DNA of 64,000 nucleotides. Source: Rebecca billardiae RCC1528. Lineage: Eukaryota; Protista; Haptophyta. The stretch spans positions 124,001 to 188,000 of the forward strand of contig OZ251255.1 in the NCBI GenBank assembly GCA_965240325.2, in the 5' to 3' direction. Both the position numbers and the translations under genes were made by a program. This document shows, one piece after another, positions 1 through 25,263 of the stretch (the first letter of the stretch is position 1; every line of letters begins with the position of its first letter). Below the pieces are notes generated by a model, which saw only the letters and a list, made by a program, of their open reading frames with translations, was not told the origin of the DNA and did not search any database.

Positions 1-3000
1 CTCCGAGTCCGCCGCCCTCGCCGCCGCCGAGCCCGCCTCCGTCGCCTCCGCCGAGCCCGCCACCGAGCCCGCCGCCGAGCCCGCCGCCGCCCTCGCCGCC
101 GCCGAGCCCACCGCCAAGCCCACCACCATCGCCGCCACCGCCGCCCTCGCCGCCGCCGTCTCCGCCGCCGAGCCCACCGCCGTCGCCTCCGCCCAGCCCG
201 CCACCTTCGCCGCCGCCCAGCCCGCCGCCATCGCCACCGCCGCCGTCGCCACCGCCGTCCCCGCCGCCATCGCCGCCGCCGAGCCCGCCGCCGAGCCCGC
301 CGCCGCCGTTGCTTCCGCCGCTGCCGCCTCCATCGCCGCCGCCCAGCCCTCCGCCCAGCCCTCCGCCGCCGTCGCCACCGCCGTCGCCACCGCCAAGCCC
401 GCCGCCCTCGCCGCCGCCGAGCCCGCCTCCGTCGCCGCCGCCGAGCCCGCCACCAAGCCCGCCGCCGAGCCCGCCGCCGCCCTCGCCGCCGCCGAGCCCA
501 CCGCCAAGCCCGCCACCATCGCCGCCGCCGCCGCCCTCGCCGCCGCCGTCTCCGCCGCCGAGCCCCCCGCCGTCGCCTCCGCCCAGCCCGCCGCCGTCGC
601 CGCCGCCCAGCCCGCCGCCATCGCCACCGCCGCCGTCGCCACCGCCGTCGCCACCGCCATCGCCGCCGCCGAGCCCGCCGCCGAGCCCGCCGCCGCCGTT
701 GCTTCCGCCGCTGCCGCCTCCATCGCCGCCGCCCAGCCCTCCGCCCAGCCCTCCGCCGCCGTCGCCGCCGCCGTCGCCACCTCCGAGTCCGCCGCCCTCG
801 CCGCCGCCGAGCCCGCCTCCGTCGCCTCCGCCGAGCCCGCCACCGAGCCCGCCGCCGAGCCCGCCGCCGCCCTCGCCGCCGCCGAGCCCACCGCCAAGCC
901 CACCACCATCGCCGCCACCGCCGCCCTCGCCGCCGCCGTCTCCGCCCCCGAGCCCCCCGCCGTCGCCTCCGCCCAGCCCGCCGCCGTCGCCGCCACCCAG
1001 CCCGCCGCCATCGCCACCGCCGCCGTCGCCGCCGCCGTCGCCGCCGCCATCGCCGCCGCCGAGCCCGCCGCCGAGCCCGCCGCCGCCGTTGCTTCCGCCG
1101 TCGCCGCCTCCATCGCCGCCGCCCCGCCCTCCGCCCAGCCCTCCACCGCCGTCGCCACCCCCGTCGCCACCGCCGAGCCCGCCGCCCTCGCCGCCGCCGA
1201 GCCCGCCGCCGTCACCGCCGCCGAGCTCGCCACCAAGCCCGCCGCCGAGCCCGCCGCCGCCCTCGCCGCCGCCGAGCCCACCGCCAAGCCCACCACCATC
1301 GCCGCCACCGCCGCCCTCGCCGCCGCCGTCTCCGCCGCCGAGCCCCCCGCCGTCGCCTCCGCCCAGCCCGCCACCTTCGCCGCCACCCAGCCCGCCGCCA
1401 TCGCCACCGCCGCCGTCGCCGCCGCCGTCCCCGCCGCCATCGCCGCCGCCGAGCCCGCCGCCGAGCCCGCCGCCGCCGTTGCTTCCGCCGCTGCCGCCTC
1501 CATCGCCGCCGCCCAGCCCTCCGCCCAGCCCTCCACCGCCGTCGCCACCCCCTTCGCCTCCACCGAGCCCGCCGCCATCGCCGCCGCCGAGCCCGCCGCC
1601 GTCACCGCCGCCGAGCCCGCCACCAAGCCCGCCGCCGAGCCCGCCGCCGCCCTCACCGCCGCCGAGCCCACCGCCAAGCCCACCACCATCGCCGCCACCG
1701 CCGCCCTCGCCGCCGCCGTCTCCGCCCCCGAGCCCACCGCCGTCGCCTCCGCCCAGCCCGCCGCCGTCGCCGCCACCCAGCCCGCCGCCATCGCCACCGC
1801 CGCCGTCGCCGCCGCCGTCCCCGCCGCCATCGCCGCCGCCGAGCCCGCCGCCGAGCCCGCCGCCGCCGTTGCTTCCGCCGCTGCCGCCTCCATCGCCGCC
1901 GCCCAGCCCTCCGCCCAGCCCTCCACCGCCGTCGCCACCCCCTTCGCCTCCACCGAGTCCGCCGCCATCGCCGCCGCCGAGCCCGCCGCCGTCGCCGCCG
2001 CCGAGCCCGCCACCAAGCCCGCCGCCGAGCCCGCCGCCGCCCTCACCGCCGCCGAGCCCACCACCAAGCCCACCACCATCGCCGCCACCGCCGCCCTCGC
2101 CGCCGCCGTCTCCGCCGCCGAGCCCCCCGCCGTCGCCTCCGCCCAGCCCGCCGCCGTCGCCGCCACCCAGCCCGCCGCCATCGCCACCGCCGCCGTCGCC
2201 ACCGCCGTCCCCGCCGCCATCGCCGCCGCCGAGCCCGCCGCCGAGCCCGCCGCCGCCGTTGCTTCCGCCGCTGCCGCCTCCATCGCCGCCGCCCAGCCCT
2301 CCGCCCAGCCCTCCGCCGCCGTCGCCGCCGCCGTCGCCACCGCCAAGCCCGCCGCCCTCGCCGCCGCCGAGCCCGCCTCCGTCACCGCCGCCGAGCCCGC
2401 CTCCGAGCCCGCCGCCGAGCCCGCCGCCGCCCTCGCCGCCGCCGAGCCCACCGCCAAGCCCACCACCATCGCCGCCACCGCCGCCCTCGCCGCCGCCGTC
2501 TCCGCCCCCGAGCCCCCCGCCGTCGCCTCCGCCCAGCCCGCCGCCTTCGCCGCCACCCAGCCCGCCGCCATCGCCACCGCCGCCGTCGCCGCCGCCGTCC
2601 CCGCCGCCATCGCCGCCGCCGAGCCCGCCTCCGAGCCCGCCCCCGCCGTTGCTTCCGCCGCTGCCGCCTCCATCGCCGCCGCCCAGCCCTCCTCCCAGCC
2701 CTCCGCCGCCGTCGCCGCCACCGTCGCCGCCGCCGAGCCCGCCGCCATCGCCGCCACCGTCGCCTCCGCCGTCTCCGCCGCCGAGCCCGCCTCCGAGCCC
2801 GCCGCCGAGCCCGCCGCCGCCCTCGCCGCCGCCGAGCCCACCGCCAAGCCCGCCACCATCGCCGCCGCCGCCGCCCTCGCCGCCGCCGTCTCCGCCGCCG
2901 AGCCAACCGCCGTCGCCTCCGCCCAGCCCGCCGCCGTCGCCGCCACCGAGCCCGCCGCCGTCACCGCCGCCGCCGTCGCCGCCGCCATCGCCGCCGCCAT

Positions 3001-6000
3001 CGCCGCCGCCGAGCCCGCCGCCGAGCCCGCCCCCGCCGTTGCTTCCGCCGCTGCCGCCTCCATCGCCGCCGCCCAGCCCTCCGCCCAGCCCTCCGCCGCC
3101 GTCGCCACCCCCGTCGCCACCGCCAAGCCCGCCGCCCTCGCCGCCGCCGAGCCCGCCTCCGTCGCCGCCGCCGAGCCCGCCACCAAGCCCGCCGCCGAGC
3201 CCGCCGCCGCCCTCGCCGCCGCCGAGCCCACCGCCAAGCCCACCACCATCGCCGCCACCGCCGCCCTCGCCGCCGCCGTCTCCGCCGCCGAGCCCACCGC
3301 CGTCGCCTCCGCCCAGCCCGCCGCCGTCGCCGCCACCCAGCCCGCCGCCATCGCCACCGCCGCCGTCGCCACCGCCGTCCCCGCCGCCATCGCCGCCGCC
3401 GAGCCCGCCGCCGAGCCCGCCGCCGCCATTGCTTCCGCCGCTGCCGCCTCCATCGCCGCCGCCCAGCCCTCCGCCCAGCCCTCCGCCGCCGTCGCCACCC
3501 CCGTCGCCACCTCCGAGCCCGCCGCCCTCGCCGCCGCCGTCGCCTCCGCCGTCACCGCCGCCGAGCCCGCCTCCGAGCCCGCCGCCGAGCCCGCCGCCGC
3601 CCTCGCCGCCGCCGAGCCCACCGCCAAGCCCACCACCATCGCCGCCACCGCCGCCTTCGCCGCCGCCGTCTCCGCCGCCGAGCCCTCCGCCGTCGCCTCC
3701 GCCCAGCCCGCCGCCGTCGCCGCCACCCAGCCCGCCGCCATCGCCACCGCCGCCGTCGCCGCCGCCGTCCCCGCCGCCATCGCCGCCGCCGAGCCCGCCG
3801 CCGAGCCCGCCGCCGCCGTTGCTTCCGCCGCTGCCGCCTCCATCGCCGCCGCCCAGCCCTCCGCCCAGCCCTCCACCGCCGTCGCCACCCCCTTCGCCTC
3901 CACCGAGTCCGCCGCCATCGCCGCCGCCGAGCCCGCCGCCGTCGCCGCCGCCGAGCCCGCCACCAAGCCCGCCGCCGAGCCCGCCGCCGCCCTCACCGCC
4001 GCCGAGCCCACCACCAAGCCCACCACCATCGCCGCCACCGCCGCCCTCGCCGCCGCCGTCTCCGCCGCCGAGCCCCCCGCCGTCGCCTCCGCCCAGCTCG
4101 CCGCCGTCGCCGCCACCCAGCCCGCCGCCATCGCCACCGCCGCCGTCGCCACCGCCGTCCCCGCCGCCATCGCCGCCGCCGAGCCCGCCGCCGAGCCCGC
4201 CGCCGCCGTTGCTTCCGCCGCTGCCGCCTCCATCGCCGCCGCCCAGCCCTCCGCCCAGCCCTCCACCGCCGTCGCCACCCCCTTCGCCTCCACCGAGTCC
4301 GCCGCCATCGCCGCCGCCGAGCCCGCCGCCGTCACCGCCGCCGAGCCCGCCACCAAGCCCGCCGCCGAGCCCGCCGCCGCCGTCACCGCCGCCGAGCCCA
4401 CCGCCAAGCCCACCACCATCGCCGCCACCGCCGCCCTCGCCGCCGCCGTCTCCGCCGCCGAGCCCACCGCCGTCGCCTCCGCCCAGCCCGCCACCTTCGC
4501 CGCCACCCAGCCCGCCGCCATCGCCACCGCCGCCGTCGCCACCGCCGTCCCCTCCGCCATCGCCGCCGCCGAGCCCGCCGCCGAGCCCGCCGCCGCCGTT
4601 GCTTCCGCCGCTGCCGCCTCCATCGCCGCCGCCCAGCCCTCCGCCCAGCCCTCCGCCGCCGTCGCCGCCGCCGTCGCCACCTCCGAGCCCGCCGCCCTCG
4701 CCGCCGCCGAGCCCGCCGCCGTCGCCTCCGCCGAGCCCGCCTCCGAGCCCGCCGCCGAGCCCGCCGCCGCCCTCACCGCCGCCGAGCCCACCGCCAAGCC
4801 CACCACCATCGCCGCCACCGCCGCCCTCGCCGCCGCCGTCTCCGCCGCCGAGCCCACCGCCGTCGCCTCCGCCCAGCCCGCCGCCGTCGCCGCCACCCAG
4901 CCCGCCGCCATCGCCACCGCCGCCGTCGCCACCGCCGTCCCCGCCGCCATCGCCGCCGCCGAGCCCGCCGCCGAGCCCGCCGCCGCCATTGCTTCCGCCG
5001 CTGCCGCCTCCATCGCCGCCGCCCAGCCCTCCGCCGAGCCCTCCGCCGCCGTCGCCGCCGCCGTCGCCACCGCCGAGCCCGCCGCCCTCGCCGCCGCCGA
5101 GCCCCCCGCCGTCGCCTCCGCCGAGCCCGCCTCCGAGCCCGCCGCCGAGCCCGCCGCCGCCCTCGCCGCCGCCGAGCCCACCGCCAAGCCCACCACCATC
5201 GCCGCCACCGCCGCCCTCGCCGCCGCCGTCTCCGCCGCCGAGCCTACCGCCGTCGCCTCCGCCCAGCCCACCGCCGTCGCCGCCACCCAGCCCGCCGCCA
5301 TCGCCACCGCCGCCGTCGCCACCGCCGTCCCCGCCGCCATCGCCGCCGCCGAGCCCGCCGCCGAGCCCGCCGCCGCCATTGCTTCCGCCGCTGCCGCCTC
5401 CATCGCCGCCGCCCAGCCCTCCGCCCAGCCCTCCACCGCCGTCGCCACCCCCTTCGCCTCCACCGAGTCCGCCGCCATCGCCGCCGCCGAGCCCGCCGCC
5501 GTCACCGCCGCCGAGCCCGCCACCAAGCCCGCCGCCGAGCCCGCCGCCGCCCTCGCCGCCGCCGAGCCCACCGCCAAGCCCACCACCATCGCCGCCACCG
5601 CCGCCCTCGCCGCCGCCGTCTCCGCCGCCGAGCCCACCGCCGTCGCCTCCGCCCAGCCCGCCGCCGTCGCCGCCACCCAGCCCGCCGCCATCGCCACCGC
5701 CGCCGTCGCCGCCGCCATCGCCACCGCCATCGCCACCGCCGAGCCCGCCGCCGAGCCCGCCCCCGCCGTTGCTTCCGCCGCTGCCGCCTCCATCGCCGCC
5801 GCCCAGCCCTCCGCCCAGCCCTCCACCGCCGTCGCCACCCCCTTCGCCTCCACCGAGTCCGCCGCCATCGCCGCCGCCGAGCCCGCCTCCGTCACCGCCG
5901 CCGAGCCCACCGCCAAGCCCGCCGCCGAGCCCGCCGCCGCCGTCACCGCCGCCGAGCCCACCGCCAAGCCCACCACCATCGCCGCCACCGCCGCCCTCGC

Positions 6001-9000
6001 CGCCGCCGTCTCCGCCGCCGAGCCCACCGCCGTCGCCTCCGCCCAGCCCGCCACCTTCGCCGCCACCCAGCCCGCCGCCATCGCCACCGCCGCCGTCGCC
6101 GCCGCCGTCCCCGCCGCCATCGCCGCCGCCGAGCCCGCCGCCGAGCCCGCCGCCGCCGTTGCTTCCGCCGCTGCCGCCTCCATCGCCGCCGCCGAGCCCT
6201 CCGCCCAGCCCTCCACCGCCGTCGCCACCCCCGTCGCCTCCACCGAGTCCGCCGCCATCGCCGCCGCCGAGCCCGCCGCCGTCACCGCCGCCGAGCCCGC
6301 CACCAAGCCCGCCGCCGAGCCCGCCGCCGCCCTCGCCGCCGCCGAGCCCACCGCCAAGCCCACCACCATCGCCGCCACCGCCGCCCTCGCCGCCGCCGTC
6401 TCCGCCGCCGAGCCCACCGCCGTCGCCTCCGCCCAGCCCGCCACCTTCGCCGCCACCCAGCCCGCCGCCATCGCCACCGCCGCCGTCGCCGCCTCCGTCC
6501 CCGCCGCCATCGCCGCCGCCGAGCCCGCCGCCGAGCCCGCCTCCGCCGTTGCTTCCGCCGCTGCCGCCTCCATCGCCGCCGCCCAGCCCTCCGCCCAGCC
6601 CTCCACCGCCGTCGCCACCCCCGTCGCCTCCACCGAGTCCGCCGCCATCGCCGCCGCCGAGCCCGCCGCCGTCACCGCCGCCGAGCCCGCCACCAAGCCC
6701 GCCGCCGAGCCCGCCGCCGCCCTCGCCGCCGCCGAGCCCACCGCCAAGCCCACCACCATCGCCGCCACCGCCGCCCTCGCCGCCGCCGTCTCCGCCGCCG
6801 AGCCCACCGCCGTCGCCTCCGCCCAGCCCGCCACCTTCGCCGCCACCCAGCCCGCCGCCATCGCCACCGCCGCCGTCGCCGCCTCCGTCCCCGCCGCCAT
6901 CGCCGCCGCCGAGCCCGCCGCCGAGCCCGCCTCCGCCGTTGCTTCCGCCGCTGCCGCCTCCATCGCCGCCGCCCAGCCCTCCGCCCAGCCCTCCACCGCC
7001 GTCGCCACCCCCGTCGCCTCCACCGAGTCCGCCGCCATCGCCGCCGCCGAGCCCGCCGCCGTCACCGCCGCCGAGCCCGCCGCCAAGCCCGCCGCCGAGC
7101 CCGCCGCCGCCCTCGCCGCCGCCGAGCCCACCGCCAAGCCCACCACCATCGCCGCCACCGCCGCCCTCGCCGCCGCCGTCTCCGCCGCCGAGCCCACCGC
7201 CGTCGCCTCCGCCCAGCCCGCCGCCGTCGCCGCCACCCAGCCCGCCGCCATCGCCACCGCCGCCGTCGCCGCCGCCATCGCCACCGCCATCGCCGCCGCC
7301 GAGCCCGCCGCCGAGCCCGCCCCCGCCGTTGCTTCCGCCGCTGCCGCCTCCATCGCCGCCGCCCAGCCCTCCGCCCAGCCCTCCGCCGCCGTCGCCGCCG
7401 CCGTCGCCACCTCCGAGCCCGCCGCCCTCGCCGCCGCCGAGCCCGCCGCCGTCGCCTCCGCCGAGCCCGCCTCCGAGCCCGCCGCCGAGCCCGCCGCCGC
7501 CCTCACCGCCGCCGAGCCCACCGCCAAGCCCACCACCATCGCCGCCACCGCCGCCCTCGCCGCCGCCGTCTCCGCCGCCGAGCCCACCGCCGTCGCCTCC
7601 GCCCAGCCCGCCGCCGTCGCCGCCACCCAGCCCGCCGCCATCGCCACCGCCGCCGTCGCCACCGCCGTCCCCGCCGCCATCGCCGCCGCCGAGCCCGCCG
7701 CCGAGCCCGCCGCCGCCATTGCTTCCGCCGCTGCCGCCTCCATCGCCGCCGCCCAGCCCTCCGCCGAGCCCTCCGCCGCCGTCGCCGCCGCCGTCGCCAC
7801 CGCCGAGCCCGCCGCCCTCGCCGCCGCCGAGCCCCCCGCCGTCGCCTCCGCCGAGCCCGCCACCGAGCCCGCCGCCGAGCCCGCCGCCGCCCTCACCGCC
7901 GCCGAGCCCACCGCCAAGCCCACCACCATCGCCGCCACCGCCGCCCTCGCCGCCGCCGTCTCCGCCGCCGAGCCCACCGCCGTCGCCTCCGCCCAGCCCG
8001 CCACCTTCGCCGCCACCCAGCCCGCCGCCATCGCCACCGCCGCCGTCGCCGCCGCCGTCCCCGCCGCCATCGCCGCCGCCGAGCCCGCCGCCGAGCCCGC
8101 CGCCGCCGTTGCTTCCGCCGCTGCCGCCTCCATCGCCGCCGCCGAGCCCTCCGCCCAGCCCTCCACCGCCGTCGCCACCCCCGTCGCCTCCACCGAGTCC
8201 GCCGCCATCGCCGCCGCCGAGCCCGCCGCCGTCACCGCCGCCGAGCCCGCCACCAAGCCCGCCGCCGAGCCCGCCGCCGCCCTCGCCGCCGCCGAGCCCA
8301 CCGCCAAGCCCACCACCATCGCCGCCACCGCCGCCCTCGCCGCCGCCGTCTCCGCCGCCGAGCCCACCGCCGTCGCCTCCGCCCAGCCCGCCGCCTTCGC
8401 CGCCACCCAGCCCGCCGCCATCGCCACCGCCGCCGTCGCCGCCGCCGTCCCCGCCGCCATCGCCGCCGCCGAGCCCGCCGCCGAGCCCGCCGCCGCCGTT
8501 GCTTCCGCCGCTGCCGCCTCCATCGCCGCCGCCCAGCCCTCCGCCCAGCCCTCCGCCGCCGTCGCCGCCGCCGTCGCCACCTCCGAGCCCGCCGCCCTCG
8601 CCGCCGCCGAGCCCGCCGCCGTCGCCTCCGCCGAGCCCGCCTCCGAGCCCGCCGCCGAGCCCGCCGCCGCCCTCACCGCCGCCGAGCCCACCGCCAAGCC
8701 CACCACCATCGCCGCCACCGCCGCCCTCGCCGCCGCCGTCTCCGCCGCCGAGCCCACCGCCGTCGCCTCCGCCCAGCCCGCCGCCGTCGCCGCCACCCAG
8801 CCCGCCGCCATCGCCACCGCCGCCGTCGCCACCGCCGTCCCCGCCGCCATCGCCGCCGCCGAGCCCGCCGCCGAGCCCGCCGCCGCCATTGCTTCCGCCG
8901 CTGCCGCCTCCATCGCCGCCGCCCAGCCCTCCGCCGAGCCCTCCGCCGCCGTCGCCGCCGCCGTCGCCACCGCCGAGCCCGCCGCCCTCGCCGCCGCCGA

Positions 9001-12000
9001 GCCCCCCGCCGTCGCCTCCGCCGAGCCCGCCTCCGAGCCCGCCGCCGAGCCCGCCGCCGCCCTCGCCGCCGCCGAGCCCACCGCCAAGCCCACCACCATC
9101 GCCGCCACCGCCGCCCTCGCCGCCGCCGTCTCCGCCGCCGAGCCCACCGCCGTCGCCTCCGCCCAGCCCGCCACCTTCGCCGCCACCCAGCCCGCCGCCA
9201 TCGCCACCGCCGCCGTCGCCGCCTCCGTCCCCGCCGCCATCGCCGCCGCCGAGCCCGCCGCCGAGCCCGCCTCCGCCGTTGCTTCCGCCGCTGCCGCCTC
9301 CATCGCCGCCGCCCAGCCCTCCGCCCAGCCCTCCACCGCCGTCGCCACCCCCGTCGCCTCCACCGAGTCCGCCGCCATCGCCGCCGCCGAGCCCGCCGCC
9401 GTCACCGCCGCCGAGCCCGCCGCCAAGCCCGCCGCCGAGCCCGCCGCCGCCCTCGCCGCCGCCGAGCCCACCGCCAAGCCCACCACCATCGCCGCCACCG
9501 CCGCCCTCGCCGCCGCCGTCTCCGCCGCCGAGCCCACCGCCGTCGCCTCCGCCCAGCCCGCCACCTTCGCCGCCGCCCAGCCCGCCGCCATCGCCACCGC
9601 CGCCGTCGCCGCCGCCATCGCCACCGCCATCGCCGCCGCCGAGCCCGCCGCCGAGCCCGCCGCCGCCGTTGCTTCCGCCGCTGCCGCCTCCATCGCCGCC
9701 GCCCAGCCCTCCGCCCAGCCCTCCACCGCCGTCGCCACCCCCGTCGCCTCCACCGAGTCCGCCGCCATCGCCGCCGCCGAGCCCGCCGCCGTCACCGCCG
9801 CCGAGCCCACCGCCAAGCCCGCCGCCGAGCCCGCCGCCGCCGTCACCGCCGCCGAGCCCACCGCCAAGCCCACCACCATCGCCGCCACCGCCGCCCTCGC
9901 CGCCGCCGTCTCCGCCGCCGAGCCCACCGCCGTCGCCTCCGCCCAGCCCGCCACCTTCGCCGCCACCCAGCCCGCCGCCATCGCCACCGCCGCCGTCGCC
10001 GCCGCCGTCCCCGCCGCCATCGCCGCCGCCGAGCCCGCCGCCGAGCCCGCCGCCGCCGTTGCTTCCGCCGCTGCCGCCTCCATCGCCGCCGCCGAGCCCT
10101 CCGCCCAGCCCTCCACCGCCGTCACCACCCCCGTCGCCTCCACCGAGTCCGCCGCCATCGCCGCCGCCGAGCCCGCCGCCGTCACCGCCGCCGAGCCCGC
10201 CACCAAGCCCGCCGCCGAGCCCGCCGCCGCCCTCGCCGCCGCCGAGCCCACCGCCAAGCCCACCACCATCGCCGCCACCGCCGCCCTCGCCGCCGCCGTC
10301 TCCGCCGCCGAGCCCACCGCCGTCGCCTCCGCCCAGCCCGCCACCTTCGCCGCCGCCCAGCCCGCCGCCATCGCCACCGCCGCCGTCGCCGCCGCCATCG
10401 CCACCGCCATCGCCGCCGCCGAGCCCGCCGCCGAGCCCGCCGCCGCCGTTGCTTCCGCCGCTGCCGCCTCCATCGCCGCCGCCCAGCCCTCCGCCCAGCC
10501 CTCCACCGCCGTCGCCACCCCCGTCGCCTCCACCGAGTCCGCCGCCATCGCCGCCGCCGAGCCCGCCTCCGTCACCGCCGCCGAGCCCGCCGCCAAGCCC
10601 GCCGCCGAGCCCGCCGCCGCCGTCACCGCCGCCGAGCCCACCGCCAAGCCCACCACCATCGCCGCCACCGCCGCCCTCGCCGCCGCCGTCTCCGCCGCCG
10701 AGCCCACCGCCGTCGCCTCCGCCCAGCCCGCCACCTTCGCCGCCACCCAGCCCGCCGCCATCGCCACCGCCGCCGTCGCCGCCGCCGTCCCCGCCGCCAT
10801 CGCCGCCGCCGAGCCCGCCGCCGAGCCCGCCGCCGCCGTTGCTTCCGCCGCTGCCGCCTCCATCGCCGCCGCCGAGCCCTCCGCCCAGCCCTCCACCGCC
10901 GTCGCCACCCCCGTCGCCTCCACCGAGTCCGCCGCCATCGCCGCCGCCGAGCCCGCCGCCGTCACCGCCGCCGAGCCCGCCACCAAGCCCGCCGCCGAGC
11001 CCGCCGCCGCCCTCGCCGCCGCCGAGCCCACCGCCAAGCCCACCACCATCGCCGCCACCGCCGCCCTCGCCGCCGCCGTCTCCGCCGCCGAGCCCACCGC
11101 CGTCGCCTCCGCCCAGCCCGCCGCCTTCGCCGCCACCCAGCCCGCCGCCATCGCCACCGCCGCCGTCGCCGCCGCCGTCCCCGCCGCCATCGCCGCCGCC
11201 GAGCCCGCCGCCGAGCCCGCCGCCGCCGTTGCTTCCGCCGCTGCCGCCTCCATCGCCGCCGCCCAGCCCTCCGCCCAGCCCTCCGCCGCCGTCGCCGCCA
11301 CCGTCGCCACCGCCGAGCCCGCCGCCCTCGCCGCCGCCGAGCCCGCCTCCGTCACCGCCGCCGAGCCCGCCACCAAGCCCGCCGCCGAGCCCGCCGCCGC
11401 CCTCACCGCCGCCGAGCCCACCGCCAAGCCCACCACCCTCGCCGCCACCGCCGCCCTCGCCGCCGCCGTCTCCGCCACCGAGCCCTCCGCCGTCGCCTCC
11501 GCCCAGCCCGCCACCTTCGCCGCCACCCAGCCCGCCGCCATCGCCACCGCCGCCGTCGCCACCGCCGTCCCCGCCGCCATCGCCGCCGCCGAGCCCGCCG
11601 CCGAGCCCGCCCCCGCCATTGCTTCCGCCGCTGCCGCCTCCATCGCCGCCGCCCAGCCCTCCGCCCAGCCCTCCGCCGCCGTCGCCACCGCCCTCGCCAC
11701 CGCCGAGCCCGCCGCCCTCGCCGCCGCCGAGCCCGCCGCCGTCACCTCCGCCGAGCCCGCCGCCGTCGCCGCCGCCGAGCCCGCCGCCACCCTCGCCGCC
11801 GCCGAGCCCACCGCCGAGCCCACCACCATCGCCGCCGCCGCCGCCCTCGCCGCCGCCGTCTCCGCCCCCGAGCCCACCGCCCTCGCCTCCGCCCAGCCCG
11901 CCGCCGTCGCCGCCACCCAGCCCGCCGCCATCGCCACCGCCGCCGTCGCCACCGCCGTCCCCGCCGCCATCGCCGCCGCCGAGCCCGCCGCCGAGCCCGC

Positions 12001-12900
12001 CGCCGCCGTTGCTTCCGCCGCTGCCGCCTCCATCGCCGCCGCCGAGCCCTCCGCCCAGCCCTCCACCGCCGTCGCCACCCCCTTCGCCTCCACCGAGTCC
12101 GCCGCCATCGCCGCCGCCGAGCCCGCCGCCGTCACCGCCGCCGAGCCCGCCACCAAGCCCGCCGCCGAGCCCGCCGCCGCCCTCGCCGCCGCCGAGCCCA
12201 CCGCCAAGCCCACCACCATCGCCGCCACCGCCGCCCTCGCCGCCGCCGTCTCCGCCGCCGAGCCCACCGCCGTCGCCTCCGCCCAGCCCGCCACCTTCGC
12301 CGCCACCCAGGCCGCCGCCATCGCCACCGCCGCCGTCGCCGCCGCCATCGCCACCGCCATCGCCACCGCCGAGCCCGCCGCCGAGCCCGCCCCCGCCGTT
12401 GCTTCCGCCGCTGCCGCCTCCATCGCCGCCGCCCAGCCCTCCGCCCAGCCCTCCGCCGCCGTCGCCGCCACCGTCCCCACCGCCGAGCCCGCCGCCCTCG
12501 CCGCCGCCGAGCCCGCCTCCGTCGCCGCCGCCGAGCCCGCCTCCGAGCCCGCCGCCGAGCCCGCCGCCGCCCTCGCCGCCGCCGAGCCCACCGCCGAGCC
12601 CGCCGCCGTTGCCGCCGCCGCCGCCCTCGTTGCCGCCGTCTCCGCCGCCAAGTCCGCCGCCGTCGCCTCCGCCCAGCCCGCCGCCTTCGCCGCCACCCGG
12701 CCCGCCGCCATCGCCACCGCCGCCGTCACCACCGCCATCGCCTCCGCCCTCGCCGCCGCCGAGCCCGCCGCCGAGCCCGCCGCCGCCGTTGCTTCCGCCG
12801 CTGCCGCCTCCATCGCCGCCGCCCAGCCCTCCGCCCAGCCCTCCACCGCCGTCGCCACCCCCTTCGCCCCCACCGAGTCCGCCGCCATCGCCGCCGCCGA
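1..12900 (+). repeat. Coding tandem array with a 390-bp (130-aa) unit of S(P)3-5 blocks punctuated by LLPPL; at least 33 units
   Basis: The marker ttgcttccgccg recurs at 309+390n for n=0..32 (309, 699, 1089 ... 12789) with no phase slip. The array decays into irregular Pro/Ser/Ala sequence from about 12900 to 13550. Confidence 0.97.
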
Positions 12901-15318
12901 GCCCGCCGCCGCCCTCGCCGCCGCCGTCCCCGCCGCCAAGTCCTCCGCCGCTCGCGCCGCCGCCGTCGCCACCGCCGTCGCCGTCGCCGAGCCCGCCTCC
13001 GAGCCCGCCGCCACCGTCGCCGCCGCCGTCGCCGCCGCCCTTGCCGCCGCCCGCGCCGCCGCCGAGCCCGCCGCCGCCCTCGCCGCCGCCCTCGCCGCCG
13101 CCCTCGCCGCCGCCCGCGCCGCCGCCCGCGCCGCCGCCCTCGCCTCCGCCGAGCCCACCGCCCTCGCCGCCGTCTCCGCCGCCGAGCTCGCCGCCCGCGC
13201 CGCCGCCATCCGCGCCGCCGGCGCCGCCGCCGAGCCCGCCGCCGCGCCCGCCGCCGCGCCCCTCGCCGCCGCCCTCGCCGCCGCCCGCCGCGCCGCCGTC
13301 GCCGCCGCCCGCGCCGCTGCCGAGCCCGCCGCCCTCGCCGCCGCCGCCGCCGCCGGGCGCGCCGCCGGGCGCGCCGCCGGGCGCGCCGCCGTCGCCGCCG
13401 CCCGCGCCGCCGCCGAGCCCGCCGCCGAGCCTGCCGCCGCGCCCGCCGCCGCCGGCCTCGCCGCCGCCGCGCCCGCCGCCGCCGTCGCCGCCGCCCGCGT
13501 CGCCGCCGTCGCCGCTGCCCTCGCCGCCGCCGCCGCCGCCCGCGCCGCCCTCGCTCGCGCGCGCGCAGCTCGTCTCGCTCCAGCCCGCGTCCGCGCCGGC
13601 CGGCGGCGGCGGCGCGGGCGGCGGCGAGCCGACGGCGGTCACGCTGCGCGGCTCCGGGCTGGCGGCGGGCGGCGGCGGTGCGGAGTGCGTCTTTGAGCCG
13701 CTGCCGAGCGCGGGCGGCGTCGGCGCGCCGGGCCCGGTGCTCCGCTCGGCCGCGACGCTCGCGCCGGGCGGCGCCGAGGCGACGTGCGACCTGCCGCCCG
13801 CCGCGCGCGCCGGCCGGTACGCAGCTGTGCTCTCGCTCGGCGGCGGCGCGCGCGAGGTGCGCACGCTGTTTGGCGACGAGATTGCAATCTCGGTGTACAA
13901 CGCGAGCGGCGTGGGCCTGCGCCGCGTGGCTCCGGACGCGTGCCCCGAGTCCGGCGGCGCGGTGCTCGAGCTCGAGGGCTGGGGCTTCGCCGACGCCGCG
14001 GCGGCGGGCGACCTCTGCTGCGTGCTGCCCGCGCTCGTGCGCGCGACGGGCGAGCCGTGCACGGCGCGCGCGCGCGCGCTGGTGGGCGCGCCCGACGGCG
14101 CGGCGCGCGCGGCGTGCGTGCTGCCGCCGCTGCCGGTGGCGCTGCGCGCGGCGGGCGGCGCGCGCGCCACGCTCCCGCTCGCGCTCGAGCTCTCGCTCGA
14201 CGGCGGCGCGCCTCGCTCGACCACGGCCGGCGTCGCCGCGGCCGTCGCCACGGGCGGCGGCATCCGCTACTACGCAGCGCCGCGCGTTGTCGGCGTGGCG
14301 CCCGCGTCCGGCGCGGCGGCGGGCGGCACGGAGCTGACGGTGCACGGCGCGGGGTTCGGCGCGCTGGGCGACGGGGGCGGCGCGCCGCACCCGCCCGGCC
14401 TCGCCTTTGCCTTCGCCCCCGCCGCGCCCGCGCCCGCGTCCGCCCTCCCTCAGGCGGTGCCGCAGTGGGCAAACGACAGCGCGGCGCTGCTGCGCAGCCC
14501 GCCGGGCTCGCAAGGGGCGGCGCGCGTGGGCGTCTCGCTCAACGGGCAGCAGTTCCACTTCGTGCAGGAGGCGGAGGAGGGCGGCGGCGCGCCGTCGTAC
14601 GAGTACGTCGGGCTGCGCCCGCCCGCGCTCGAGGCCGCCTTCCTCGACCCCCGCGGCTCGTCGGTGGCGTTCTCCTTTGGAGCGCAGCGCACCGACCGCG
14701 CTGCCATGGCGAGCGGACTGGGCGGCTGCGAGGGTGTGCTGGACGCGCCGACGGTGGCGGCGGTGCGCGGCGCCGACGACGCGCCGCCGGCGTGCTACTG
14801 GCGCGACGACTCGACGCTCGTCGCGCTGCTCGGCGCGCGCACGCGGCTCGCGCCCGGCGCGACCGTCGGCGTGCGCGGCGGCGCGCTCGCGCCCGCCGCG
14901 TGCGCGCCCGCGCCGTGCGCCGAGCCGTCGCTGCGCTCGGCGGCGGCGAGCGTCGCCATCGACGCGGACGCGCCGTGCGCGCCCGCGCCGTGCGAGCCGC
15001 CACGCGCCGCGCTCTCCGGCCCCGCCACCCTCTCCGACTGCGCCGCCGAGGCCGCCGTGTTTGACGGCACCGCCTCGGCCGGCGGCGGCGCGCGCCCGCT
15101 CGCGTACGCGTGGCGCGTTGACCCGGCGGCCTCGGACGACGCGGCGGGCGCCGAGGCCGTGAACGCGCTGCTGGCGGGGCTGGCGCCGAGCACGGGCGTG
15201 CTCACGCTCGGGCCGGGGGGCGACGCGCCGCTCCCCGCGCGCGGCGCCTTTGTCCTCGCGCTGCGCGTCGCCGCGTTCACCGGCGCCACGTCGGACGCCG
15301 CGCGGCTGCGCGTCGAGC

Positions 15319-15355
<37 letters not shown>

Positions 15356-15537
15356 GCCGCCGCCGCCGCGCGTGGCCATAGTCGGCCCGGCGCGCGCGCG
15401 CACGGCGGCGGCGGCGGCGCTGCTGCTGCAGGCGGAGGCGACGCGCGCGCCGTGCGCGCCGCCCGCCGCGGAGGGCGCGCGCCTCGCCTTCGCCTGGCGC
15501 GTCGCCTCCGTCGAGCCCGCCTCCAACGGCTCGACGT

Positions 15538-15571
<34 letters not shown>

Positions 15572-18147
15572 GCACGCGCCGCGCGTGCCCGACCTGAGCG
15601 CGCGCGCGGACGACGGCGGCGCGGGGCCGATCGGTGCGCGCGCGGCGCTCTCGCTCGGGCCGCACGCGCTGAGCGCGGGGTACGTGTACACCTTCGCCGT
15701 CGCCGTCTCCGACGCGCCCTCCGACGCCGCCGCCGCCGCCGCCGTCGCCGAGGCCAGCGTGGCGGTGGAGGTGATTCGTCGCCCGCTGCGCGCCGCCATC
15801 GCGGGCGGGGAGGTGCGGCAGGTGAGCACGGTGCAGCGCGCGCCGGAGGGGGCGGCGGCCGGCGGCAACGGCACGCACGTGGCGGACGCCGCCGCCGCGC
15901 TCGGCCTCGACCTCGGCGCGGGCGCCGAGCTGCTGCTCGACGCCTCCGCCTCCTCCGACCCGAACGAACCGAGCGACGACGCCGGCGCCGCCGACGGCGC
16001 CGCCGCCGACGACGACGCGGCGGGCGGCGGCGGCGGCGGCGGCGACGGCGGTGCGTCTGCGCTGGTGGTGTCGTGGGCGCTGTCGCGCGTGGAGGCGGAC
16101 GGCTCGCACGCCCCCCCGCTCTCGCTCGGCGCCCTCGGCGCGACCGCCTCCGGCCCCGGCGGCGCGCTCCTCCGCCTGAACGCGAGCGCGCTGCCAGCCA
16201 GCGAGTACTCGGCTGTGGCGAGCGTGACGCGGCGCGGCTGCGTGGCCGCGGGCGTGGCGAGCGCGCGCGTCGCGCTGCACGTGGTGGCGGCGCCGACGGC
16301 GCTGCCCAGCGTGGCGCTGCGCCTGCCGGGCGGCGCGCCGCCCAAGCTGCGCGCCACGTGGCACCTCCCCGCGCACCGCGCGCGCCTCGCGGCGCACGCG
16401 CGGCTCGGCGGCGCGTGGGGGCCGCGCGCCTTCAACTACAGCTGGGGCCTCTGGCTGGTCGGAGCGGGGGGCGCGCGCGCGCCCGCGCCGGGCGTGGCGC
16501 TGTCGGACGCGGCGCGCGTGAGCACGACGGGCGCGCGCGGGCCGAGCCTCGCGCTCCGCCCGGGCGTGCTCACCCCCGGCGCGACGTACACCTTCGCCCT
16601 CACCGCCACCCTCGCCGCGCCGGGCACCGAGCGCCTCGCGGCGTCGCTCGGCGTCCTCGGCGCCTCGGCAAGCGCCGAGCTGACACTCGTCGTGAACCGC
16701 CCGCCGCACGGCGGCGGCGTGGAGGTGGAGCCGCGCGGCGGCGCGCCGGCGCTGCAGCCCGCGTTCGCGCTCGCCGCGCCCGGCTGGAGCGACGACGACG
16801 ACGACGACCTGCCGCTCTCCTACGCGTTTGGGCACGCGCCCGACGCCGCCGACGGCGCCGCCGACGGCGCGGCCGATCGCGCGCCCGTGCCGCTGGGCCC
16901 GGCGCGCGCCTCGCCCTTTTTGCGCGGCGTGGCGCTGCCGCCGGGCAACGGCACCGCGGCCGTGCGCGTGTGCGACGCGCTCGGCGCGTGCGCCGAGGCG
17001 CGCAGCCAGCCCGTCGCCGCGTGGCACCCCGCGAGCGCCGCCGCCGCCGCCGCCGCGTTTGAGGCCGCGCTCGGCGCCGCGCACGCCGCCGCGGCGCGCG
17101 GCGACGCGCCGCGCGCGCGGCAGCTGCTCGGCGCGCTGGCGGGCGCGCTGGGCGGCGCGCCGCGCAACGGCACGGGCGCGTCCGCGCTGCTCGAGCTCGC
17201 CGCCGAGCTCGGGGACGCGGCGGGCGCGCCCACGCCCGAGGCGCGCGCGCAGGCGGCCGCGGCGCTCGCGGCGATTGTCGCGGGCGCGGCCGCGCCCGGC
17301 GGCGGCGCGCTCGGCGGCGCGGCGCGCGCGCGCGCGCTCGAGCAGGCGGCGAGCATCGCGGGCGCGGCGGCCGAGTCGGGCGTGGGCTCGCGCGCCGCCG
17401 CCGACCTCGTCCTCGCCATCGACGCCGCGCTCGACGACCACGCCGACGACCACGCCGACGCCGACGCCGACGGCGCCGCCGCCGACGGCGGCGCCGCGCT
17501 CGGTGCGGCCGCGCGCGCGGCGCTGTCGGCGCTCGCGCGCGCGCTGCTCGCCGGAGCCGGCGCGGGCGAGCCGAGCGCGGCGGCGGCGGGCGCGGCGGTG
17601 GCGGTGGCCGCGGCGCGCGTCGCCGCGGCCGACGTGGGCGGCGCCACCGCCGCCGGCGCCGACGGCGCGGGCGGGCTCGTCTCGCTCCCGCCCGGTGTGC
17701 TCGACGGCGCCGCGGCGGCCGACGGCGGCGGCGCGGACGCGGGCGCGCTCGAAGCGCTGCTGGGCGGCGGTGGCGTGGACCTCGTCGTCTTCTCGATCGC
17801 GCGCAACGTGCACGCCGACGGCGGCGGCGCGGTGCCGCCCAACGGCACGTCCGCCGCGCAGCCCCCGCCCCCCGCCCTCGCCTCGCGCGTCTTCTCCGTC
17901 TCGCTCTTCCCGGAAGGTTCCGGGAAGCCGCTGAGCGTGGCCGGGCTGCGGGCGCCCATCCTGCTGGGGCTGCCGGCGGCGCAGCAGCAGGCGCAGCAGG
18001 GCGGGGGCCCGCTGCAGTACGGGCCGAGCGGGGAGTGCTGGGAGTTCAGCCCGCACCCGTGCGACTCGGCCGCCGCCGCCGCGTCGGACGCCGCGTGCGC
18101 CGTGTGCGGCGGCCACGGCACGTGTGTGCGCGCGCCGCCGGACGGCG

Positions 18148-18181
<34 letters not shown>

Positions 18182-19863
18182 GTGCGCGTGCGAGCCCCCG
18201 TACAGCGGGCCTGCGTGCGGCGCGCGCGCCGAGTGCCACTGGTGGGACGAGGGCGCGGCCGCGTGGTCCACCCAGGGCTGCGCCACCGTGCAGGGCCCCG
18301 ACCCCGCCCTCCTCTACTGCGCGTGCAACCACCTGACCGACTTTGCAATGCTGCAGCTGACGCGCACGGGCGCGACCGCCGAGCCGCCGCCGCCGCCGCC
18401 GCCGGCGCGCGCCGCCGCCGCCGCCGCCGGCGGGCTGGGGCACGTGAACACGTTCACGGCGGGGCAGGCGGCGGTGATCCTCGCGAGCCCCGCCGCGGGG
18501 CACCGCGCCAACCGCACCGTCTACCGCGTCGTCTACCTCCTCGCCGCCGCCAACGCCGCGCTGCTGCTACTCGCCGCGTTGTCGGATGCGCGCGAGCGGC
18601 GCGCGTACGCGCGGTGGCGCGCGCGCGAGCTGCACTCGACCGGCGGCGAGCGCGCGCTCGGGCTGCTGACGCACGTGCAGCGCAAGCGGCGGCGCTCGCT
18701 GCGGCGCTCCTCCTCCGAGTCGTCGCTCCTCGGCGCGCTGCCGTGGCGCGCCGCCGCCGCCGGCGCGCGCACGTCGGCCGCCGCCGCCGCCGAGCCGCCG
18801 CCGCCGGCCGGCGCAGCCGCCGGTGGCGGTGGCGGTGGCGGTGGCGGTGGCTCGTGGTCCGGCACGCTGCGCCGGCGCAGCTCCGGCGTGGGCGGCTCGG
18901 TGCGCGCGGCGCTGAGCTCGCCCGCGCTCGGCCAGCGCCGGCCGCGCCGCTCGTGGACGCCCGACCGGCCCACCGCACATCTGCCCACACCTCGGCCGGA
19001 GGTGGCCATGGCGCTGGACGCGCACGCGACAGACGGCGCGGCCGCGACGCGGCGGCGCGCGGCGCTCACGCTGCGGGCGCGGCTGCGGGCGGCGGGCGCG
19101 GCGGTGCTCGACGGGCACACGCTGCTCGCGCTGTGCCTCGCGCCCGCCGAGCGCGCGCTGCGCCGCGCCGAGCTCGTGCAGAGCCTCTTCAACGCCCTCG
19201 CCCTGCAGGCCGTGCTCGCAGCGGCGCTCTACGCACGGCCGGGCGCGCGGGCCGGAGGGGGCGGCGGCGGCGGCGGGCGCGCCGACGAGGGCGGCGCCGG
19301 GGTGGGCGAGATGGTGGGCGCGTGGCGCGGCGCGCTGGGCGGCGGCGCCGACGCCGACGCGCCGCGCCCCGCCGACGACGTCGCGCCGCACCCCGCCCTT
19401 GTCCTCGCCTACGGCGTCGCGGTGGGCCTGGCGGCCGCGCCCGGGCTGTTGCTGTTCAGAGCGGTGTGGCGGTGCGCCGCGCGGCTCGGCGGCGACGCGG
19501 AGCGCGCGCACGTCTCGCGCCGGCTGCTCCGCGCGCTCTCCGCCGTGGCGCGCGCGCGCGCGCACGAGGCGCTCGCGCCCGCGTCCGTCCCGCCGAGCGC
19601 GCGCGGGCCCGCGCGCGGCGGCGCCGCCGCCGGCGGCGGCGGCGGCGACGGCCTGCCGCGCGGCGCGCCAACGACGCCGACTGGCGAGGGCGGCGGGGCG
19701 GCCGGCGCGGGCCGCGCGCCGCGCGCGCCGCCGCCCGCCGCGCCGTGGTTCGAGCAGCGGCCGGGCGAGTCGTTTCTGCAGGGCGCGGCGCGCGCGCGGC
19801 GCGAGGCCGCCGCGCGCCTCGCCGCCGCGGTCGGCGCCTCGCCCTTCGCCTCACGGCCCGGCA

Positions 19864-19903
<40 letters not shown>

Positions 19904-20673
19904 GGGCGCGCGGCTCGGCCGCACGCTGCCGGCGTCAGGCCTCGGGGCCACGGCGCCGCCCAAGCCGAGCGCCGCCGGCGCCGACGAGGCGGCGGCGGAG
20001 GTCGGTGGCGGCGACGGCGGTGCCGCCGCGCCCGACGCCTCGGACGACAGCAACGCCGCCGCCGCGCGCCGCTCGCCGCGCCGCTCGGCCGAGCGCGAGG
20101 CGCGCGCCGCCGACGCGCGCGCCGACGCGGCCGCGTCGCCGGGCGCGCGCGCAGCCGCGTGCGTCGGCTCGCGGCCCAGCACGCCCGGCTCGGCGCGCTC
20201 GGCGCGCCGCGCCGCGGCCGTCGCGGACGGCGGGCCGGCGGCGGGCGCGGGCGTGCGCGCGCGCGCGCGCGCCGACAGTCCCGCGAGCAGCCCGCCGTCC
20301 GCGCGCAGTGGCAGCGGCGCGAGCGCAGATGGGGCGAGCGGCGCGTCGGCGCGCGGCGGCGGCTGGGGGCTCGGCCTGCCGCCCACGCCCGGCGCGCGCC
20401 GCGCGGCCGCGAGCCGCACGCACCCCGACGACGACGATGGCGGCGGCGGCGGCGCGGTGGCGGCGGGCGCGCTCGCATCGCCGCCACTCATGTCACCAAC
20501 CGCCGCCGCCGGCGGCACCGGCTGGCGCGCGCCCAGCCTGCCGCCCACGCCGGGCGCGCGCCGCGCCGCCGCCAGCCGCACGCACCCCGAGGGCGCGGCC
20601 GCGCCGGGGTGTGCCGCCGCGCAGGGCGGCGTGCTCGGCTGGCTGTGGCCGAGCAGGCCGTCCACAGCCGGCA

Positions 20674-20704
<31 letters not shown>

Positions 20705-21327
20705 GAGCGGCGGCGGCGGGAGCGGCGGCGGCGCGCGCGGCGCGCGCCCTCGCGCCGCGGCTTCGCGCACGCACGCCGAGGGCGAGGGCGAAGACGAGGG
20801 GCTCGGCAGGGGCGCGTGCGGCAGCCACGGGCGCAGCACCGCCGCCGCCGCCGCGCGCCGCACGCACCCGAGCGCCGATGGCTCGGGCTCAGAGGCCGAG
20901 GAGGGCGGCGGCGGCGGCGGCGACGGCGGCGACGGCGGCGGCGGCGGCGGCGGCGGCGGGCGGCGCACGCCGCGGCCCGCCGCGCGGGGCGCGCTGCCAC
21001 CGCTCGCGCTCGGGCGCGGCGCGGCGGTCGGCGGCGGCGGCGCTCTCCCGTCTCCGCCCGCGCGCGAGGGCGCGCGCGGCCGCGCCGCCGCGCCAGTGCA
21101 CCTCGTGCGCGGCAGCGCCGCCGCCGCCGCCGCGCCGCAGCCGGCCGCACAGCCGCCGCCCGGCGCCGCCGCCGCCGGCGGCGGCGGCGGCTGGGCGCGC
21201 TCGCCGCTGAGCGCGCGCTGCTCGCCCTTCGAGCGCTCGCCCCGCGCGGCCAAGGTGTCGCCCAAGGAGCTCGCGGCGCACCAGGGGCGGCGGCACGCCG
21301 GGTGGCGCGCCGCGCTCGGAAGCGACG

Positions 21328-21363
<36 letters not shown>

Positions 21364-23018
21364 GCGGCACCACGCGCGGGGCGGCAGCACCGGGCAGCGG
21401 CGGGCGCGGCGCGGACTCGGCCACGGGCCGCGGCGCGCGGTGGCGCGCCGCGCCGCCCGCGCCGCCCGCGCGCGCCGACTCGCGCGGCGCGATCGCTGTG
21501 GTCGCCGCCGCCGCCGCCGCCGCCGCCGCCAGCGACGACGACGACGACGACGACGCCGACGACGACGACGGCGCGCGCGACTCTTGCGACGACGACGACG
21601 ACGACGACGTCGCCGCCGCGCTGCGCGAGGCGGACCTCGCTCTGCTCGGCTCGCCCACCGGGTATGGCGGCGGCTTCTTTGCGCCCGCCGCCGCGCCGCT
21701 GGCGCTCGGCCGGCCGCTCTCGCGCGGGCGCGGCGCGGGCAGCGCCGCGCCCGACAGCGGCGGCCGCGTCGGCGCCGACTCGGCCGCCGCCTCGGAGCTC
21801 GGCGGGCCGGCGCAGACGTTTGGCACGCGCCCGCCTTCGCAGGGCTCGGCGCGCGCGCGCGCGGCCGCGCTGCACAACGCGCTCGGCGGCGGCGGCGGCG
21901 GCAGCCGCGGCGGCAGCGGCGGCAGCGGCGGCGGCGGCAGCGCGGCGCGCATCGCCGCCCTCTCCGCGCGCCTCAGCTCGAGCCCGGAGGGCAGCCCGCC
22001 GCGCGAGCGGCGCGCGGCGCGCGGCTCCGAGCTGAGCGCCGCCTCGGCCGCGTCCGCCGAGCAGCCGCCCGGCGCCGCCGGCGCGTGCGGCGCCGAGGGC
22101 GGCGGCGGCGCGCGCGCGCTCGGCGGCGGCGGTGGCTCGCTCGTGCTCGGCGCGCGGCCGCGGCCGGGCGCGCGCGGCCGGCTGCGCGGCGGCTGGGACG
22201 AGGTGGTGGCGCCGGTGAAGGGCGTGGAGCAGCTGCAGCCGCGCGGGCAGTCGAGGGGCGCGGGCGGCGGCGCGGGCGCGCCGCGCGCGCACCCGCCGCC
22301 GGGCCCGCCGCCGGGGCCGCCGCCGCCCGCGCCGCCCGCGCACCCGCCGCCGCGCGCGGCGGACGGCGCGGCGCCGCCGTCGCCGCGCGCCGCCGCGCCG
22401 CTGCGCTCGGCGCGCGCGCTCCCATCGCTGCTGCTGCCGCCGGCAGACAGCGCGGCGGACGCGACGGCGTGCGCCGACGCGCGCGCGCCCACGACCTTCG
22501 TCGCGCCGCCGCCGCCGCGCGCGCACGCGGGCCCGGGCGGCACGGCCGGCTCCGCGCTCAGCTCCGCGCTCAGCTCCGTGCTTAGCCCGCGCGCGCGCCG
22601 CCGCTCCGCGCGACTCTCGACAGAGTCGGCCTGCTCCGCGCCTAGCTCCGCGCCGGGCAGCGGCGAGGGCCGCAGCCGGCGCGGGTCGGGCGCCAGCCGC
22701 GCCAGCCGCGGGAGCTGTGGCGCCACGCCGCCGCGAGCGCCGCCCGCGACCGCCGCCGCCGCCGCCGCGCCGCCGAGCGGCACGACGGCGCCCGCGCTGC
22801 CGCGCGCGCTGCGCGAGCGCCTGAGGCGCGAGCCTCGCCTCTCCTCCGCCTCCGACTCGGCGGCGTCCGGCAGTGCCGCCGCCTCGCGCTCCAGCACGCC
22901 GCCGCCGCCGCAGCCGCCGCGGCAGCAGCAGCAGCCGGTGCCGCGCGCGGGCATGGACGGCAGCGCGCCGCCGCGGCTGCTGCGCGCGCTCGGCAGCGGC
23001 CGCGCCGAGAGCAGCAGC

Positions 23019-23051
<33 letters not shown>

Positions 23052-24098
23052 GGCGGCGGCGACGGCGGCAGCGGCAGCGGCAGCGCGCGCTCGCGCGTGC
23101 CGCCGATCCCAGCGCAGGACTGGGCGCGCGCGCTCGCCGCCGCGACCGCGGCGCGGCACGCGGCGGGCGGCGCCGCGCCCGGCGCCGAGGCCGGCGCGGA
23201 GGCGCCCGACCCGCTCGCGCGGCCCGACGCGCCGGCGAGCGCGGGCTCGCAGCACTCGGCCGCGAGCGGCCACAGCGCCGCGCACTCCGTCGCGTCGTCG
23301 CTCGCGCGGCTCGCAGCGCCGGACGACGGCGGCGGCGGCGGCGGCGGCGGCGGCGCGCGACGCAGCGGCGCGCTGCCTTGGTCCTCGGCGCGCGGCGGCG
23401 CGGGGGCGCGCGGCGCGACGGCGCGGCGGCTCGCGGCGGGTGCGCAGGCGCTGCTGCGCGCCGAGCTCGCCGCCGTGCGCGTCGCCTTTGCCATGTACGA
23501 CCTGGGCGGCGTGGGCGGCCTCGGCGCCGCCGAGCTCGGCGTGCTGATGGCCGAGGCGGGCGACCCGCTCACGCCGTCCGAGCAGCGCCGGCTGCTGCGC
23601 GCGCTCGACGGCGGGCGGCGCGGCGCGGTGGGCGAGAAGGCGCTGCTCAGCTGGTACGCGCGGCAGCGGCGCGGCGAGCTGGCGCGCGAGGTGGCCGCCG
23701 CCGCCGCCGACGGCGGCGGCGGCGGCGGCGGGCCGGTGGCGCGCTGGCGCCGCGCCGCGTGCGCGCGCGCCGCGCTGCCCGCGCGCGCGTGGCAGGGCCT
23801 CGCGTGGGCGGCCATGCTGCTCTGCTTCGCCGCGCTGTGCGCGCTGCTCATCGTGTACGGCCGCGTGCTCGGCGCCGCCGCCACGCGCGCCATGCTCGGC
23901 ACGTGGCTCGCCGCGCTCGGCCAGACGGGTGCGCTCGAGGAGCCGCTCGCCCTCGTGCTCGCGTACCTGCTGCCCGCGATGGCGGCGGCCGCGCGCAGGA
24001 GCGCGGCCGCGCGCGCGTCCGCGGGCGGGATCGACGCGTCCGCCGCGAGCCTCGTCGCGCGCGCGCTCGACGCGCTGGCCTTTGTCTTCCGCGGCTGA
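1..24098 (+). CDS. Giant polycystin-1 (PKD1)/REJ-GPS-like membrane protein with extensin-like Ser-Pro rod; 5'-partial, >8,000 aa
   Basis: The frame is open from base 3; the ORF track's 'M' at 309 is a TTG Leu inside the repeat. After the repeat come three IPT/TIG-like units (e.g. PRVVGVAPASGAAAGGTELTVHGAGF...SLNGQQF) and REJ-type motifs (LLLDASASSDP, GVLTPGATYTF, VNRPPHGG...F.L.APGWSD..DLPLSYAF, VCDALGA). These are followed by an EGF-like module (CGGHGTC...CACEPPYSGPAC), a GPS motif (CHWWD...WSTQGC...CACNHLTDFAML) and five hydrophobic segments. Stop TGA ends at 24098. Confidence 0.85.
13566..14610 (+). other. Three IPT/TIG-like Ig folds of the PKD1-like protein
   Basis: Three recurrences of the 'v..v.P.s.p..GG..ltl.G.gf' pattern (QLVSLQPASAPAGG, RRVAPDACPESGGAVLELEGWGF, RVVGVAPASGAAAGGTELTVHGAGF), with closing SLDGG/SLNGQQF motifs in the second and third. 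Confidence 0.7.
15000..17030 (+). other. REJ-like region
   Basis: FDGTAS..LAYAW, LDASASSDP, FNYSW, LTPGATYTF, NRPPHGG, GWSD/DLPLSYAF and VCDALGA motifs, as in PKD1/REJ proteins. Confidence 0.7.
18100..18352 (+). other. EGF-like module followed by GPS autoproteolysis motif (H-L|T at 18330-18338)
   Basis: CAVCGGHGTC...CACEPPYSGPAC followed by CHWWDEGAAAWSTQGC...YCACNHLTDFAML, which matches the GPS consensus C-x-W/F...W...GC...C-x-C-x-H-L-T/S-x-F. Confidence 0.9.
23460..23660 (+). other. Degenerate EF-hand-like pair in the large loop of the PKD1-like protein
   Basis: RVAFAMYDLGGVGGLGAAELGVLM...LTPSEQRRLLRALDGGRRGAVGEKALLSW has calmodulin-lobe spacing, but several Ca2+ ligands are missing. Confidence 0.6.
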
Positions 24099-24868: not shown

Positions 24869-25225
24869 ATGCCTGACGCGCCATCCGCCGGCGCCGACGA
24901 TGCGCGCGCGGCGCTCAAGGCGGAGCTGCTCGAGCTGATGGGCCGGAAGGACGAGCTGGAGAAGGAGCTCGCCTCCATCGTCGACGCGCTCGGCGCGGCC
25001 GGGATGGGCGGGCTCCGCGAGGCGCTCGTCGACGCCGAGGGCTTCCCGCGCGCGGACGTGGACGTGCACGGCACGCGCGCGCTGCGCCACCGGCACGCGA
25101 TGCTGAACACGGACCACAAGGCGCTGATGGCGACGATCGAGCGGCAGATGCACGCGCTCCACGCGCTGCCCGCGCCGCAGGCCGCCGCGCCCCGCGCGCC
25201 CGCGCCTCGCGCCGCGCCCGCGCCG

Positions 25226-25263
<38 letters not shown>

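Follow-up and report, generated by a model that had tools for sequence, protein, structure and literature searches.

We identified in Rebecca billardiae RCC1528 an intact gene whose predicted product, a membrane protein of more than 8,000 residues, joins a very long Ser-Pro rod to a base resembling the front half of polycystin-1. We favour, on a modest balance of probability, the interpretation that this is a single-chain membrane glycoprotein whose main role is that of a surface filament, be it a hair, tether or spacer, equipped with its own release point; as predicted from its sequence, it would probably be a surface hair made of a single molecule. This interpretation is based on selection acting on the rod, on a GAIN domain recognised by both profile and predicted fold, on the match of a compact relative (P0011) to polycystin-1, on rods at six other loci, on a headless rod-bearing frame in Diacronema, and on the filaments formed by a comparable protein of Chlamydomonas, MST3.

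The gene occupies positions 3 to 24098 (+ strand, as are all its features below) of the window, i.e. the whole 64,000-nucleotide stretch of DNA that was analysed. Frame +3 is free of stop codons from 3 to 24095, ends with a stop at 24096-24098, and is still open at the 5' edge of the window; hence, the 8,031 codons seen here represent a gene whose 5' end lies upstream. We found no stop and no frameshift across these 24 kb, GC3 is 94-99% in the non-rod remainder of the gene, and no low-GC intron-like stretch occurs 3' of the rod. The claim of an earlier, sequence-only reading that a single frame joins at least 4,500 residues of Ser-Pro repeat to IPT, REJ, GPS and transmembrane (TM) helices was thereby borne out. 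The next gene (24674-25633) encodes a Nas2/PSMD9-like proteasome chaperone. The window also holds a gene with a Sigma-70 region 4 (33909-35330; probably a plastid sigma factor, in keeping with a photosynthetic eukaryote), a large gene (41479-51774) encoding a channel that combines ion-transport, cNMP-binding and ankyrin domains, and a tandem duplication (55745-64000; period 3,806 bp, identity 99.8%) that bears a quinone oxidoreductase whose best matches are just 36-46% identical.

The rod (3-13550; aa 1-4516) consists of 33 regular units of 130 aa, each with one Leu-containing break, followed by a degenerate border. It contains 3,388 Pro (75%), 994 Ser (22%) and 106 Leu among its 4,516 residues, with six Arg but no Lys or Tyr; the Pro runs are mostly of three to five residues, the longest being six. 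At the DNA level, the period is 390 bp, with 34.7 copies, 95% matches and 0% indels. Five of the six reading frames are open across the repeat, and since the DNA is low in A/T, openness is weak proof of coding; we therefore tested for selection. Relative to the consensus, the 33 units carry 345 synonymous and 10 nonsynonymous codon differences, although only about 121 of the 390 sites per unit are synonymous. Distinct alleles number 73 at third positions versus 15 at positions 1-2, and a distinct-allele count of 64 silent versus 7 replacement changes gives a replacement-to-silent ratio near 0.05. We considered whether the antisense Gly-rich frame might be the coding one, but rejected it, since its ratio of synonymous to nonsynonymous differences (279/53) fits worse than that of the sense Ser-Pro frame (323/7). 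We conclude from this codon pattern that the rod is under strong purifying selection at the protein level, and hence coding.

Might the long rod nevertheless not be made as drawn, the array being inflated by assembly, spliced out, or part of a silent gene? Two sets of units are identical, merged haplotypes are possible, and the public gene model of a rod-bearing Diacronema relative omits the rod. However, 30 of the 33 units are distinct, their variation is nearly all silent and free of indels, and it is mosaic (the four-gamete test fails for 138 of 231 site pairs), which suggests the pattern expected from unequal crossing-over and argues against collapse or inflation. Moreover, rods recur in the PacBio assembly of another species, and the frame runs for 24 kb without interruption. 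An assembly expansion thus appears unlikely from the repeat itself, and we regard this explanation as a whole as very unlikely indeed. GC3 in the rod is 80%, against 94-99% elsewhere in the gene. No perfect CCG run in it exceeds six, and the silent differences may serve to break up unstable triplet tracts. A switch between TCN and AGY codons was observed at two Ser positions.

At 0.31 nm per residue, the 4,516 residues would give a computed, stretched-out contour length of 1.4 µm, or 40 nm per unit, in agreement with what had been estimated from the sequence. The rise used agrees with cryo-EM values for MST3 (PMC11015965) and for the free glycofibril TLP-4 (12.4 Å per tetrapeptide; PMC11725842).

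The rod is followed by three IPT/TIG domains (13569-14579; aa 4523-4633, 4639-4750 and 4762-4859), detected by a family HMM with E values of 5e-8, 3e-8 and 2e-15; Pfam alone detects one, and the third clears the Pfam cut-off if scanned alone. A conserved domain of about 125 aa without a name (14619-14993), delimited by BLASTP to relatives, then precedes the REJ module; several relatives that lack the rod have it as their N-terminal domain, and its nearest Atlas clusters, likewise without a name (score 0.90), are a lead only. The REJ module spans 14994-17021 (aa about 4998-5673), with a Pfam REJ match (PF02010) of E 7e-20 on aa 5502-5709 and a front part placed by comparison with relatives that carry a full REJ. 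The GAIN domain (17037-18362) comprises a helical subdomain A and a beta subdomain B, the latter containing an EGF-like insert (18036-18230) directly before the GPS motif (18231-18353; Pfam E 3e-9). Cleavage is predicted between bases 18335 and 18336, i.e. between His6110-Leu6111 and Thr6112, and both cysteine pairs and the His-Leu-Thr are intact. A profile built from the window protein and 32 relatives matches adhesion-GPCR GAIN over both subdomains (best E 8.6e-18), and the window protein alone gives weak GAIN matches against the PDB. An AlphaFold model of aa 5550-6126 (pLDDT 84, pTM 0.86) retrieved eight significant Foldseek matches, all eight to structures containing GAIN domains. Thus, the domain order proposed earlier stood for IPT (by family profile), REJ and GPS, and the intact HL/T site can now be placed within a whole GAIN domain; the EGF unit is reduced to a weak insert (Pfam E 0.44) inside it. 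Ten N-glycosylation sequons occur before TM1 and none after it, which fits a rod on the cell exterior.

The helices reported after the GPS are present, and we set their number at five, split 1+2+2 by long loops: TM1 (18528-18590, from hydropathy and family alignment), TM2 and TM3 (19164-19466), and TM4 and TM5 (23793-23972). Hydropathy gives four clear peaks; TM5 is weaker and was placed by family alignment. The loop of about 190 aa before TM2 is low-complexity and contains a degenerate IQ-like motif, with no Pfam match to PLAT between TM1 and TM2; in the model of a relative this loop is helical. TM3 is followed by a low-complexity Ala/Gly/Pro/Arg/Ser loop of more than 1,300 aa, predicted to be cytosolic (19467-23465), and by an EF-hand-like pair with degenerate calcium loops (23466-23660; Pfam EF-hand_7 E 0.0028, below cut-off). 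No channel domain follows TM5, the frame ending about 40 aa beyond it. TM profiles alone found no match in the PDB and no significant GPCR match, and Foldseek with the TM model returned EF-hands only. The model of P0011, a different protein from the window protein, has polycystin-1 as its best match among 48,161 chains, its base superimposing on TM1-5 of polycystin-1 (8z6b_A, residues 3063-3610) with Z 17.8 and rmsd 3.2 over 196 residues. A distant relative, P0095, matches human polycystin-1 on TM2 and TM4-5 (E 1e-4) and links to the family profiles, to which family the window protein aligns. From the modelled five-helix match and the end of the frame some 40 residues past TM5, we conclude that the base is a polycystin-1 front half that lacks both PLAT and the channel.

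The comparison with human polycystin-1 (PKD1) can therefore be made precise. Shared are REJ, GAIN with HL/T, the five-helix N-terminal membrane domain and a long TM3-TM4 loop. The window protein lacks PLAT, TOP, the TM6-11 channel half and the long C-tail; its visible stalk consists of the Ser-Pro rod and three TIG domains rather than PKD repeats, and, unlike polycystin-1, it has an EF-hand-like pair in the inner loop. The description as a polycystin-1-like receptor hence holds for REJ, GAIN/GPS and the five-helix domain but fails for PLAT, TOP and the six-helix TRPP channel half. As PLAT and the channel half are missing, the protein is not a PKD1 family member in the strict sense.

The word-based homologue search with the window protein gave no match, whereas a full HMMER scan found relatives, the best named being proteins of Diacronema lutheri and Pavlovales sp. 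CCMP2436 (34-43% identity), among which the window protein is nested in a FastTree phylogeny (support 0.975). GAIN, the post-cleavage strand and the five-helix base are conserved across the family, and the base is also present in oomycetes and brown algae. At six loci in other assemblies (L001, L002, L003, L005, L006 and L093), a Ser-Pro rod, in frame or adjacent, precedes the annotated start. L001 (Diacronema lutheri, 4144-21816, from a PacBio assembly; PMC8379373) is the only complete case among them: a frame of 5,890 codons that has no head, its signal-like peptide leading directly into a Ser-Pro rod of 1,877 aa. This rod is missing from the NCBI model KAG8459354 (3,751 aa), which starts after it. 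An N-terminal head on the window protein is thus not assured, to judge from this headless relative. In the locus closest in the tree (L003, 7411-10000; Pavlovales sp. CCMP2436 KAJ1635852; support 0.93), the rod segments are interrupted by gaps and separated from one another by a folded module that is itself repeated, and TIG domains are absent. Four family members (P0005, P0011, P0013 and P0032) begin with a signal-like sequence and carry no rod, from which we conclude that the rod is, as far as these predicted proteins indicate, a modular addition to a more widely spread base. In marine metagenome relatives (L013, L015, L020, L021-L023, L027 and L033), a proline-rich tract lies just before the EGF-like insert and GPS, of about 240 aa within the GAIN beta subdomain in L020 and at least 686 aa in L033; it marks a predicted second site of rod addition. 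That these loci lack REJ and GAIN subdomain A was considered and rejected: most begin inside the proline tract, and the tract of L020 is inserted in GAIN.

A different reading, close to that proposed from the sequence earlier, is a stalked sensory receptor, in which the rod would keep an N-terminal binding domain a micrometre away from the cell, and either binding or a pull would be transmitted via GAIN to the five-helix base and from there to a partner, which might be a separate TRPP/PKD2 channel. The family-wide conservation of GAIN, strand and base is in keeping with it, as are two features that relatives keep in canonical form, namely an IQ motif behind TM1 and, ahead of TM4, a pair of calmodulin-like EF-hands. 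Rodless relatives with the same base and these motifs suggest a signalling ancestry, which counts against the filament interpretation. However, no head is visible and headless relatives exist, the channel half is missing, and the segment after the GPS in the window protein departs from the family consensus. Furthermore, positions 3 and 5 of its first EF loop offer no acidic ligand, the second loop is missing these as well as the final Glu, and the IQ-like motif is degenerate, having lost its Gly. From these losses, the window copy probably does not bind or sense calcium itself. We consider the sensory receptor somewhat unlikely, though a serious candidate.

The nearest described counterpart is MST3 (Mstax), the axis of the Chlamydomonas flagellar hair, an 8,572-aa protein in which a PKD2-like domain bears a proline rod (PMC11015965). 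The two proteins share their size, a regularly repeating N-terminal polyproline rod about a micrometre long, a polycystin-type anchor and a very long inner segment; MST3 rods form real filaments, a 429-residue tip having been measured at 146 nm (PMC11015965). Proline-dense regions have been proposed to be exposed rods, and intricate patterns to bind partners (PMC11015965); by analogy, the window rod would be of the proline-dense, exposed kind. MST3 repeats, P13/P11(XXP)3, are coated by MST1, whereas the window rod has no such repeats. MST3 has its own PKD2-like channel domain, and it joins PKD2 and SIP; no REJ or GAIN has been reported in it. The two are hence alike in outline, with the window protein anchored by the other, non-channel half of a polycystin. 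The earlier statement that no PKD1 or adhesion receptor with such a rod was known consequently survives, in the literature searched, for REJ-GAIN proteins, but not for polycystin-type proteins generally.

Other systems are more distant. Adhesion GPCRs also place GAIN behind a long extracellular stalk but have a seven-helix domain, where the window protein has five polycystin-type helices and no 7TM. Plant extensins and volvocine HRGPs share the repeated Ser-Pro3-5; the window rod, in contrast, has no Tyr or Lys for cross-linking, is membrane-anchored and far longer, and belongs to a non-green lineage. The protein is thus neither an adhesion GPCR nor a classical extensin. Protist REJ-GPS proteins (Ectocarpus Esi0130_0068, PMC4700764; Phytophthora capsici KAG1686220) share REJ, GPS and a multi-helix anchor but are of 1,400-3,900 aa, with no proline rod described. 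In the literature searched (mostly without subscription journals), no paper turned up that describes a five-helix REJ-GAIN protein bearing a proline rod, nor any account of pavlovophyte hair proteins. Precedents exist for every part and for the overall design; the combination appears to be new.

In the filament interpretation, the protein would enter the secretory pathway through an upstream signal peptide, and its Pro and Ser would be O-glycosylated, stiffening a polyproline-II rod; both steps are modelled on known families, and ExAD-like genes in haptophytes (PMC5371791) lend indirect support to hydroxyproline glycosylation. Against a cell size of roughly 5 µm, the rod could reach 1.4 µm or beyond. 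After a cut at HL/T, the rod-bearing fragment would be held non-covalently on a membrane fragment of 1,920 aa, from which force or turnover could release it, and the long inner loop may tie the filament to the cortex or axoneme.

If GAIN cleavage served mainly to free the rod as a glycofibril or mucilage strand, the protein would be an export device, which we judge very unlikely. GAIN cleavage normally leaves both fragments associated, and a 183-kDa membrane fragment would be costly for plain secretion. On the other hand, a detached N-terminal form is known for polycystin-1 as well (PMC4810088), and a rod with six Arg and no Lys would resist trypsin-type proteases. Free glycofibrils of unknown source with a Pro/Ser-or-Thr tetrapeptide core, TLP-4, occur in pond water (PMC11725842), but the TLP-4 repeat has two variable positions and is tied to no haptophyte. 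A more elaborate proposal is that of a cleavable one-gene hair on the non-channel half of polycystin-1, convergent with MST3, in which this half, as a free-standing module, binds a TRPP channel in trans and passes on the pull of the rod, making it a naturally split PKD1; we regard this as unlikely.

The rod family is probably under-reported in public annotation, given that the Diacronema gene model we checked leaves out the rod. It supplies candidate genes for the surface hairs of algae and for orphan cryo-EM glycofibrils, and its architecture would surprise specialists in polycystins and algal surfaces. Since this algal family has only the front half of polycystin-1, in some members with a micron-scale lever and in others without one, it would provide a natural dissection of the roles of the polycystin-1 N-terminal five-helix domain and of GAIN cleavage.
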